The notes beneath the pieces were generated by a model that saw only the letters and a program-made list of their open reading frames with translations, was not told the origin of the DNA and did no database searches. This document shows, one piece after another, positions 27,394 through 29,224 of a stretch of 64,000 nt of DNA; the stretch's first letter is position 1; each line of letters begins with the position of its first letter. Origin of the DNA: Antechinus flavipes. Taxonomy: Eukaryota. The stretch is from positions 75,950,001 to 76,014,000 of the forward strand of contig NC_067399.1 in NCBI RefSeq assembly GCF_016432865.1, in the 5' to 3' direction. Both the position numbers and the translations under genes were made by a program.

Positions 27394-27479
27394 GAAAGTC
27401 CCAGATCCTCTTATCCAAGACCCTTGAAGAGAGGCCAGTAGGCAGTTGAGAAGAATTTGGAGATAAGTGTTAGAATCTC

Positions 27480-28185
27480 TTAGAGGGCAAATAGTAGGAG
27501 GGGAAATACGATGAGGGGGAGTTTCTGGGGAACAGCGCGGTTTGCATAGAGCAGCTGCATTGGGATTGCCTTGGGCAGGGTCAAACCACATCTGAATGTA
27601 GCGCCCACTGCCCAGTCTCTCCTTGGTGGCCTTGTAAGAGTTGTTCCAGATCTTCTCACAGAACTCAGCTGGGGTTGGGAAATAGTGAGGGAAAGGGCGA
27701 CAGAGGGCCAGGGCAGAACAATCATTCTTACCTGGACTCCAGGCAGAATCTTTGTTCCAGGCAGATTTGCAGGTAAAAGAGGTACGGCAGTCTTCCCACC
27801 ATTCTTTACAATCTTCCCAGCAAAGAGGCACATTCAGGACACGCTCCTTCCTCCAACTTGACTTCACCTTCTGGATCCAGGGTCCCGGGTTTGGGGAACA
27901 CTCATAGAGGCAGGCATCTTGGATAAATTGCTTCTTACAGCTGGGGGTCACCACACCACAATGTCCAAAGTTGAAAATGTATAGAGGAGACATGTCCATG
28001 TGAATTCCCCAGCTTGTGTTCGCAGTGCAGCAGGCATTATCCTTCCAGGGAATACACTGTTCATGGAGCTCATTTTCAGGTCCTGGTTCCTTCTTGTGGT
28101 GTTTAGCATCCATACAAATATTGAGCAGCTCCCTTTCAGTCTGGACCACGGTTGCAGCCAGCAGCCCTAGCCACCACCATTCTAT
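27480..28185 (-). pseudogene. IZUMO1R-like: Processed pseudogene of folate-receptor-family gene, most similar to JUNO (IZUMO1R/FOLR4); whole CDS
   Basis: Translation [13 protein letters not shown]...[16 protein letters not shown]...SPLY...HCG...ECSPN...FDPAQGNPN. No introns at the three conserved FOLR junctions (EQ|CIP, IQK|VKS, SPG|KND). Likely start is ATA at 28183-28185; one Cys to Tyr change; an 8-bp deletion before the GPI signal. Family certain, orthology inferred. Confidence 0.85.
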
Positions 28186-28244
28186 AACTTTGCGTAAAAG
28201 AAAAGAAAGATGTTGATCTTATAGAAGAGGCTGTCTGCATAGAT

Positions 28245-28688
28245 TGAGAAGACTGCTGTACCTCTTTTACCTGCAAATCTGAAGACTGCCATATCTCTTT
28301 TACCTGCAAATCTGCCTGGAACAAAGATTCTGCCTGGAGCCCAGGTAAGAACGATTGTTCTGCCCTGGCCCTCTGTCGCCCTTTCCCTCACTATTTTCCA
28401 ACCCCAGCTGAGCTCTGTGAGAAGATCTGGAACAACTCTTACAAGGCCACCAAGGAGACAGGGCAGTGAGCGCTGCATTCAGATGTGGTTTGACCCTGCC
28501 CAAGGCAATCCCAATGCAGCTGTAGCCCAGCTCTATGCAAACCGCGCTGTTCCCCAGAAACTCCCCCTCATCGTATTTCCCCTCCTACTATTTGCCCTCT
28601 AAGAGATTCTAACACTTATCTCCAAACTCTTCTCAACTGCCTACTGGCCTCTCTTCAAGGGTCTTGGACAAGAGGATCTGGGACTTTC
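28245..28688 (+). pseudogene. IZUMO1R-like: Inverted second copy of the 3' half of the same cDNA (WEDC...to stop at 28602, plus ~85-bp 3'UTR)
   Basis: Reverse complement of 27394-27798 with ~10 substitutions, a 2-bp deletion and a 33-bp tandem duplication; retains RCIQMW and the [30 protein letters not shown]-type tail. Confidence 0.9.
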
Positions 28689-29224
28689 CTCCCTCCAAAT
28701 GTCTCCAAATCCAAAGGTTTGTCTTTCAGCCTCCAGCCAGCCAGTTGGAAAATGGAATGAATCTCTCTTGCCTCTGAGAGAGGGCTTCTGGCTCTCAATC
28801 TCCAATATAGCCTGGTTAGCTTTTCTTAGAGGCCTCTCTCTCTCCTTGGTTCTAAGAGCTCTCGCAGCTTTGTCCTTTGCTTCTGCCTCTGCTTTCTTCA
28901 ACCTCCAGAGCCAGCACCAAGTTTAAGTTGTAATGAATCTTTCTTGCCTCCGTCTGTTTCTCATATATGAGAGAGAGGAATTGTGGGATATGAGAGAGAG
29001 AGAGAGATTATGGGTTTCTTCCCATAGTGCTCTCTGGCCCTAAGAGCTTCAAGGAAGGTGTGAATTCACAAAGTTTACTTTGTGAAACTCCCATACTTGT
29101 GAACTCCAATGAGTAAAGTTGTGAACACAAGCATTGTATCAATTAGTTCTACTTAGTACCTTGTTTCAGGTTCTGGCCCAAAACATCCACTCTAAAGAGT
29201 TAGCAGTTTGTAAAGATTCCAACA
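28689..29224 (-). mobile_element. Right LTR (U3-R portion) pointing into the cDNA hairpin
   Basis: Homologous to neighbouring LTRs (gagctcttagaaccaaggagagagagaggcctctaagaaaagctaa); no AATAAA/ATTAAA seen on its sense strand; no U5 end. Confidence 0.8.

Follow-up and report, generated by a model that had tools for sequence, protein, structure and literature searches.

The 64-kb window of the Antechinus flavipes genome analysed here (family Dasyuridae, chromosome CM028218.1; all coordinates are positions in this window) contains a 1904-bp palindrome, 27321-29224, built from a spliced retrocopy of JUNO (IZUMO1R), the egg's receptor for sperm, with long terminal repeat (LTR) and other endogenous retrovirus (ERV) sequence at both ends. 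Our analysis suggests a one-step origin for the palindrome, as a fold-back self-primed product of reverse transcription that was inserted whole, and that it is now, on balance, a neutrally decaying relic with the potential to form a hairpin RNA. The preliminary description of this locus had proposed a more active role, in which the LTR drives a hairpin transcript that yields small interfering RNAs (siRNAs) against JUNO; most of the structural claims behind that proposal stand, while regulation of JUNO by such siRNAs appears unlikely.

The architecture of the palindrome is well defined. Repeat finding and self-BLAST recovered the two arms, 27394-27798 and 28245-28688, and the 446-nt loop between them where they were first described. 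In a global alignment of 27394-27798 (reverse-complemented) with 28245-28688, the arms share 392 matches and differ by 11 mismatches (10 transitions, 1 transversion) and three indels of 33, 8, and 2 nt, giving an identity of 97.3% excluding gaps; the longest perfect run is 97 nt, in agreement with the earlier figures (~97%, ~10 substitutions, 3 indels, a 96-bp run). The 33-nt "indel" is a tandem duplication, visible as a direct repeat at 28248-28313. The structure also extends beyond the arms: the JUNO-derived part of arm 2 reaches 28695, 6 nt past its previously reported end, the LTR piece begins at 28696, and a 73-nt inverted pair (27321-27393 and 29152-29224, 97% identity) carries the palindrome outward to termini TGTTGG...CCAACA (TG...CA), with a direct GGGTAA on each side. 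Folding of the minus-strand transcript, a check proposed in the preliminary description, predicted a single near-continuous stem of ~400 bp for 27393-28695 (minimum free energy -960.7 kcal/mol), and the 1904-nt unit folded at -1221 kcal/mol compared with -559 +/- 11 for shuffled sequences. On one transcript, the long inverted repeat could thus form double-stranded RNA (dsRNA) of at least ~300 bp, which is the structural requirement for an endogenous siRNA hairpin locus.

Derivation from JUNO, as originally proposed, is supported by both similarity and phylogeny. An uninterrupted 310-codon frame on the minus strand spans the whole Folate_rec domain, which is complete (Pfam, E 7.7e-56; minus-strand frame 27217-28149), and the closest proteins are marsupial entries named "sperm-egg fusion protein Juno" (Sarcophilus 91%, Sminthopsis 89%, Notamacropus 79%). 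A PDB search was ambiguous as to the paralogue (FOLR1 at 307 bits versus JUNO at 296 bits); because of this near-tie, a maximum likelihood tree was built before the JUNO label was accepted. The tree places the copy as sister to Sarcophilus JUNO (support 96/80) inside dasyurid JUNO (100/100), with a marsupial JUNO clade at 100/99 and a split between JUNO and FOLR1/2-type receptors at 94/91. This topology agrees with published work in which JUNO arose early in mammals and was retained in marsupials, the JUNO-IZUMO1 interaction being conserved in opossum (PMC4807442).

The copy is processed. Five Sminthopsis JUNO exons map colinearly, back-to-back, and intron-free onto 28259-27392 at 86-95% identity, and arm 2 maps to the last Sminthopsis JUNO exon plus the final 69 nt of the preceding one; because each arm crosses an exon junction without an intron, both arms come from spliced cDNA. 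The 5' end includes 5' untranslated region (UTR) sequence homologous to Sminthopsis JUNO exon 1. Several lesions disable it: the native start codon has changed from ATG to ATA, a conserved Cys is replaced by Tyr, an 8-nt deletion in arm 1 frameshifts the glycosylphosphatidylinositol (GPI)-signal tail, and arm 2 carries a 2-nt deletion. With its spliced structure and these disabling lesions, the pseudogene status claimed at the outset is upheld, and judged by its sequence the copy is a full-length, young, lineage-specific, non-coding JUNO processed pseudogene.

The 3' end of the copy sets it apart from L1-type retrocopies. The Sminthopsis JUNO 3'UTR runs ~300 nt further to its AATAAA, and the copy ends before that point, at ...GGGACTTTCCTCCCTC (28695), from which it passes directly, with no intervening A-run, into LTR sequence. 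An L1-mediated retrocopy should have a poly(A) tail at the polyadenylation site of its mRNA and a 7-20-bp duplication of an A/T-rich target; this copy has no such tail, its flanking repeat is the 6-bp GGGTAA, and L1-type retroposition was rejected as the source. Arm 1 lacks the final 6 nt of this JUNO end together with ~456 nt of the LTR, and the asymmetry between the two sides is therefore a ~462-nt deletion in arm 1, not an insertion in arm 2.

Several observations concern JUNO in these marsupials more generally. Apart from the RefSeq model XP_051829515.1, which derives from this locus, no Antechinus protein of the JUNO clade was found in the protein collection at 113-542 amino acids, and the genuine A. 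flavipes IZUMO1R seems to be unannotated or missing from the collection used. The Sarcophilus JUNO entry is labeled "LOW QUALITY PROTEIN" and has a gene range of 144 kb. The motifs FIQD and SWRKER, which we take to include folate-contacting residues, are identical to those of folate receptor alpha in Australidelphian JUNO proteins and in this copy, the corresponding Monodelphis JUNO sequences being FIQV and RLGKES. Their retention is not easily squared with published work inferring that folate binding was lost from JUNO before marsupials and eutherians diverged (PMC4807442).

The retroviral part of the palindrome was identified through a related element in the window. Within the window, 28696-29185 has short matches at 13705-13783, 44890-45144, and 46549-46808, and it has another near 18243-18580 in the Sminthopsis JUNO locus (L002). 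The segments 44741-45144 and 46407-46808 are direct repeats, 90-95% identical and 1665 bp apart, and on the minus strand of the element that they delimit (44741-46808) a TGG-initiated 17-18-mer lies 3 nt after one LTR (46403-46386), while a 16-nt purine run abuts the other LTR upstream (45160-45145); the plus strand has neither a primer-binding site (PBS) nor a polypurine tract (PPT). The 17-18-mer presumably represents a tRNA-Lys1,2 PBS, save for two CpG-decay changes. From these features, the sequence at 44741-46808 is a small class-II-like LTR element in minus orientation with TG...CA LTRs. The element is non-coding, with LTRs of ~400 nt and an interior of 55-57-nt tandem repeats (45199-45308, 45565-45743), and its flanks show no matching duplication (AATAAG versus GATAGA).

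Over its first ~45 nt and in a central block, the hairpin LTR matches the LTRs of this element. Because the PBS and PPT of the homologous element fit the minus strand only, the sense of the hairpin LTR is also the minus strand: it starts TGTTTTGGGCC at 29185 and points into the hairpin, the orientation that had been assigned to it earlier. This relationship also led us to reject 28689-29224 as a short interspersed element (SINE) or as a plus-strand LTR. By way of the related element, with its TG...CA LTRs, PBS, and PPT, the hairpin LTR appears to be class-II-like. Betaretrovirus-like ERVs, particularly an env-less clade resembling intracisternal A-particles, have amplified throughout Dasyuridae (PMC11334065).

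Alignment with its relatives suggests what the hairpin LTR has kept and what it has lost. In local alignment it has TGAAAGACA...GGATTTGGA in common with them but reads ACCTTT where they have AATAAA, and it ends 17 nt past that position; it is therefore U3-R without U5, ending near the expected cleavage point of an ERV transcript. As claimed initially, the LTR carries no poly(A) signal (neither AATAAA nor ATTAAA occurs on either strand in 28601-29300), and a minus-strand AATAAA is present downstream at 26842-26847. The TATA region of the relatives aligns to no TATA in the hairpin LTR, the TATA candidate offered in the preliminary description, CATATATG, sits within an inserted GA-rich stretch, and the CpG observed/expected ratio is 0.08. 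On each side, the outermost 39 nt (27321-27359 and 29186-29224) fall outside the LTR proper, since the related LTRs start 39 nt further in; these segments finish in a purine run, AGAGTGGA, that resembles the tract upstream of related 3' LTRs, and we infer that they are ERV interior. Positions 27321 and 29224 were accordingly discarded as ordinary provirus ends. The Sminthopsis match at L002 18243-18580 is a solo LTR of the same broad family in reverse orientation, 3 kb downstream of Sminthopsis JUNO and within SINE-like sequence. Its position beside JUNO is probably coincidental, and its presence there makes the LTR family older than the Sminthopsis/Antechinus split.

The exact ends of the inverted repeat, the direct GGGTAA repeats, the placement and microhomology of the inversion junction, and the spliced nature of both arms together suggest that the palindrome was already formed when it was inserted, in a single event. 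The junction (~28247-28254) falls where homology to the parental 5'UTR (Sminthopsis exon 1) ends, and it shows the microhomology GAAG, which the reverse complement of the 5'UTR (TGAGAAG) has in common with exon 4 (TGGGAAG). The retroviral sequence is the same at the two outer ends and comprises 39 nt of ERV interior and U3-R; one copy of it is now mostly deleted. An identical 6-mer at the exact boundaries has a chance probability of 5e-4, or 1.8% with +/-3 nt of slack. We infer from this sequence evidence that the palindrome is a one-step product of self-primed reverse transcription. An antisense JUNO cDNA whose 5' part was ERV sense sequence would have been extended to the 5' end of the mRNA; its end could then have snapped back onto its own exon 4 via the GAAG microhomology, and extension of the folded cDNA to its own 5' end would have produced identical termini. 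A slipped restart at the junction would fit the 33-nt tandem duplication seen there. The position of ERV U3-R sense sequence ahead of antisense JUNO could reflect use of the 3' end of an ERV RNA as primer or, alternatively, a template switch. The finished palindrome would then have been inserted as a unit into the olfactory-receptor (OR) cluster a few million years ago. The 6-bp repeat fits a betaretroviral integrase but would also fit capture at a staggered break.

Alternatively, a conventional retrocopy may have landed beside an ERV, with a DNA-level event, a replication template switch or fold-back repair, later duplicating part of it in inverted orientation. Microhomology at the junction is compatible with such an origin, and microhomology-mediated inverted duplications bearing a spacer are a known class of rearrangement. 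However, the arms end at exactly the same nucleotide, the flanking GGGTAA is direct rather than inverted, the junction falls at the very 5' end of the cDNA, and neither a poly(A) tail nor any L1-type hallmark is present to mark the supposed first step. We therefore give this two-step origin a minor share of the probability and retain one-step formation by self-priming.

Divergence between the arms dates the insertion. The arms differ at 2.7% of sites, and when these differences are polarised with Sminthopsis, five fall in arm 1, five in arm 2, and one is ambiguous, as expected of two neutral copies of equal age. If the neutral rate is taken to be 1-2.5e-9 per site per year, this divergence corresponds to an age of roughly 5-14 million years, which is consistent with the tree in placing the insertion after the Sminthopsis split and near or after the Sarcophilus split. 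It also predicts that each arm is now only ~1-2% from the parental sequence as it stood at insertion. Flank searches returned no second copy of the flanks that might represent an empty site, and the LTR/JUNO junction had no match in a metagenome scan. The even split of arm changes, the indels, and the accumulated ~462-nt deletion are the grounds on which we regard the locus as decaying neutrally.

RefSeq gene models cross the palindrome on both strands. XP_051829515.1, "folate receptor alpha-like [Antechinus flavipes]", matches the minus-strand frame of the window at 100% identity, and its locus, reverse-complemented, equals 17060-38478 base for base. Its minus-strand coding exons (28478-28304, 28217-27510, and 27085-27060) all have GT-AG borders; translation of the antisense of JUNO arm 2 supplies its first 58 residues, and an unrelated downstream exon supplies the last 8. 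As a protein, the sequence indicates, XP_051829515.1 is meaningless and represents a pseudogene model. On the plus strand, an OR model has a range of 28483-34075 and a length of 351 amino acids. From this range and length, together with the open reading frame (ORF) and the splice motifs, the model would begin with 30 JUNO-derived residues, probably an upstream exon with an in-frame ATG that was promoted to start codon.

These models raise the possibility that the insertion was co-opted, without any RNA interference (RNAi), as a start or first exon for the OR gene at 33110-34075 (+) and for a spliced minus-strand non-coding RNA. The range and length of the OR model fit exactly a 30-codon arm-2 exon spliced to the OR ORF, the donor CATC|GT is mirrored in the two arms (used by the OR model in arm 2 and by the minus-strand model in arm 1), and the polypyrimidine-AG acceptors at 27086 and 33109 are strong. 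Furthermore, upstream non-coding exons are common in OR genes. However, the 30 JUNO-derived residues at the start of the OR protein probably arose in annotation, through the in-frame upstream ATG, and no plus-strand promoter was identified. Exon co-option thus seems improbable, if by no means far-fetched, and the models amount to a hint of transcription rather than proof. RNA-seq from twelve A. flavipes tissues, including ovary and testis, was available to NCBI, and the public data set numbers 106 samples (PMC9290055). Exact-ORF look-ups in public assemblies gave no match for the 310-residue frame, the 98-residue antisense frame, or the 61-residue arm-2 frame as transcripts or further copies.

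Spelled out as a mechanism, the role proposed in the preliminary description is more specific: the LTR would drive a minus-strand hairpin in the oocyte, Dicer would cut it into endogenous siRNAs (endo-siRNAs), and antisense guides from arm 2 would direct AGO2 cleavage of JUNO mRNA and so tune its dosage. If transcribed, a minus-strand RNA should fold as the ~400-bp near-perfect hairpin described above, with its 5' arm antisense to JUNO mRNA, and in principle such a hairpin would be a Dicer substrate. The LTR is minus-sense and has no poly(A) signal, so a transcript started there would read through, and even the spliced minus-strand model would still pair over at least 175 nt between exons 28478-28304 and 28217-27510 in an exon-by-exon reading. 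Among 385 arm-1 21-mers, 203 recur in arm 2; with Sminthopsis JUNO exons as a proxy for the Antechinus parent, 79/385 and 91/431 arm 21-mers (~20%) are identical even to that more distant gene, and complementarity to the parent is probably not limiting given the youth of the copy. There are also precedents in mouse oocytes and in Drosophila (Nmy/Dox). In mouse oocytes, endo-siRNAs from processed pseudogenes regulate genes, and 21-23-mers that depend on Dicer arise from natural hairpins, Optn among them (PMC13399003, PMC11239679).

On the other hand, mouse oocyte RNAi rests on an LTR-driven, N-terminally truncated Dicer whose causative insertion is confined to Muridae and Cricetidae; no similar truncated Dicer was found in other mammalian oocyte transcriptomes, and endo-siRNAs in non-rodent oocytes are minimal (PMC13399003). 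With full-length Dicer, the Optn hairpin and natural inverted repeats yield <10-50 reads per million (PMC11239679). For a non-rodent mammal to make siRNAs at effective levels, expression would have to be unusually high or the Dicer isoform unusual. Within the locus itself, the family TATA region is not conserved and CpG is depleted in the hairpin LTR, the setting is an OR cluster, the arm differences and indels look neutral, and the predicted 3' intron would cut ~115 nt from arm 1. We therefore regard LTR-driven siRNA control of JUNO as quite improbable. The fullest version of the idea, an ERV-capped, self-primed JUNO hairpin transcribed in growing Antechinus oocytes, whose siRNAs set the level of the sperm receptor, is a long shot; if it were true, gene-regulating oocyte RNAi would have arisen independently in a marsupial, with a fertilisation gene as its target, much as Drosophila hairpin RNAs (hpRNAs) keep reproductive genes in check.

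A decaying relic born in one step is not free of difficulties, and the following points weigh against it. Relatives of the LTR in the window are few and diverged, and the tRNA-Lys label of the PBS is our own presumption. The 6-bp flanking repeat may be a coincidence, and ERV sense sequence ahead of antisense JUNO cDNA would need either an RNA primer or a template switch. The orientation of gene and LTR departs from the published model of LTR-mediated retroposition. Neutrality was judged from one genome at this locus. Spliced RefSeq models cross the arms on both strands, and since ovary and testis RNA-seq was available to NCBI, the locus may well be transcribed. Finally, abundant long dsRNA triggers RNAi in bovine, porcine, and ovine oocytes, and the same review leaves room for another mammalian lineage with functional oocyte RNAi (PMC13399003).

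Two further explanations carry very little weight. An intact protein-coding gene, as XP_051829515.1 is annotated, would accord with the 310-codon frame over the whole Folate_rec domain and with the existence of a RefSeq model, but the native start codon is lost, the antisense origin of the first 58 model residues leaves no signal peptide, Tyr stands in place of the conserved Cys, and the frameshift removes the GPI-signal tail; a functional protein is hardly credible. An assembly artefact is just as implausible: the assembly is PacBio-based (PMC9290055) and long reads with a missed adapter do make artificial palindromes, but 11 substitutions, three indels, and a ~462-nt deletion separate the two arms here, the 446-nt loop is asymmetric, and the flanks are unique with a direct repeat on both sides.

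Features of the JUNO palindrome and of the gene models that use it, with positions in the 64-kb window.
Feature	Position	Strand	Basis or remark
Last coding exon of XP_051829515.1	27060..27085	-	polypyrimidine-CAG acceptor; stop 27060-27062; AATAAA 215 nt beyond stop
Left GGGTAA direct repeat, putative target-site duplication	27315..27320	.	matches right copy
Outer 39-nt segment starting TGTTGG, purine run at end; like ERV interior just upstream of U3	27321..27359	+	inverted copy of 29186-29224
LTR remnant, first 33 nt of U3, TGTTTTGGGCC...	27360..27392	+	~462 nt deleted relative to arm 2
JUNO (IZUMO1R) full-length spliced retrocopy, 5'UTR to truncated 3'UTR, no poly(A) tail	27393..28250	-	Pfam, exon colinearity, tree
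Arm 1: JUNO sense, last 69 nt of exon 4, last exon, and 3'UTR	27394..27798	-	repeat finding, alignment, fold
Loop: 5' part of retrocopy (5'UTR and first ~400 nt of coding sequence)	27799..28244	-	exon alignment, fold
Arm 2: part of the same spliced cDNA in inverted form, crossing the exon 4/5 junction	28245..28695	+	antisense to JUNO in minus-strand transcript
33-nt tandem duplication, inner end of arm 2	28248..28313	+	direct repeat
OR model first coding exon, apparently 30 codons of JUNO C-terminus from arm 2	28483..28572	+	ATG 28483, donor CATC|GT, joined to 33110-34075
LTR piece, U3 and R only, no U5, no AATAAA	28696..29185	-	alignment to related LTRs
Outer 39-nt segment ending ...CCAACA, partner of 27321-27359	29186..29224	-	inverted pair
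Right GGGTAA direct repeat	29225..29230	.	matches left copy

The surroundings of the palindrome are those of an OR gene cluster. Four intact OR ORFs, all on the plus strand, lie in the window (10671-11627, 33044-34075, 40304-41263, and 60239-61204; Pfam 7tm_4, E 1e-53 to 1e-59), and the hairpin is 4.4 kb upstream of one of them. A 213-residue ORF at 16825-17466 (+) contains a partial RVT_1 domain (1.9e-16) and is presumably a fragment of a long interspersed element. No Rfam families were found in 25000-35000.

Were the hairpin active, it would be the first source of gene-regulating endo-siRNAs outside rodents and would act on the egg's receptor for sperm, in a genus whose mating system, with extreme sperm competition and a single synchronised mating season, makes sperm-egg conflict plausible. 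Even as a relic, the locus offers a clean natural example of a palindromic retrocopy, seemingly from one reverse-transcription event, with fold-back self-priming, ERV ends, and a 6-bp repeat, and such one-event retrocopies could be a route for the instant origin of hairpin-RNA loci. The findings also bear on annotation: "folate receptor alpha-like" in A. flavipes RefSeq is a pseudogene model with an antisense JUNO N-terminus, and the neighbouring OR model appears to carry 30 residues of JUNO origin.

In its workings, the locus is, by analogy, closest to the inverted-repeat pseudogenes that act as siRNA sources in mouse oocytes and to Drosophila Nmy. Like the mouse sources, which include inverted-repeat and antisense processed pseudogenes (Tam 2008 and Watanabe 2008, cited in PMC13399003 and PMC11239679), it is a long inverted repeat of a processed pseudogene with an LTR upstream and a parent expressed in the oocyte, and its dimensions (a stem of ~400 bp and a loop of ~450 nt) are similar to those of the Optn 3' inverted repeat (a ~300-bp stem and a ~1-kb loop). 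Unlike them, it resides in a marsupial host with no known truncated oocyte Dicer and is known from sequence alone, and its palindrome was apparently born in one step with ERV sequence at both ends.

The resemblance to Nmy of Drosophila simulans (PMC2062475) and to the testis hpRNA class (PMC10317233) lies in a young, lineage-specific retrocopy of a reproduction-related gene. Nmy was retrotransposed from Dox and carries near-perfect parental inverted repeats of 345-380 bp, with siRNAs predicted against the parent (PMC2062475). Its second arm was judged a secondary duplication after retrotransposition (PMC2062475), whereas the antechinus arms seem to be primary. Furthermore, the function of Nmy is proven genetically, and flies have a dedicated siRNA Dicer, Dcr-2; the antechinus hairpin is a sequence-level finding.

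In its origin, the copy is a JUNO processed pseudogene that lacks the L1 hallmarks and shares part of the signature of LTR-mediated retroposition. As in the chimeric retrocopies of Tan et al. 2016 (PMC5131818), which arise when templates are switched in particles of LTR elements, LTR-element sequence is joined to a retrocopy of a partial, 3'-truncated mRNA that lacks a poly(A) tail. Microsimilarity at the fusion point is a further feature of those cases (PMC5131818), and the antechinus fusion lies at 28695/28696. In that model the gene stands in sense between direct 5' and 3' LTRs (PMC5131818); here the U3-R pieces are inverted, antisense to the gene, and without U5. The 5'-inverted retrocopies made by L1 twin priming (PMC2912911) are likewise RNA-derived, with an inverted 5' segment and a flanking target-site duplication. 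However, twin priming inverts a different part of the RNA without duplicating the 3' end and leaves a poly(A) tail and longer duplications at A/T-rich sites, none of which is seen here, and it was rejected as the source of the antechinus palindrome.

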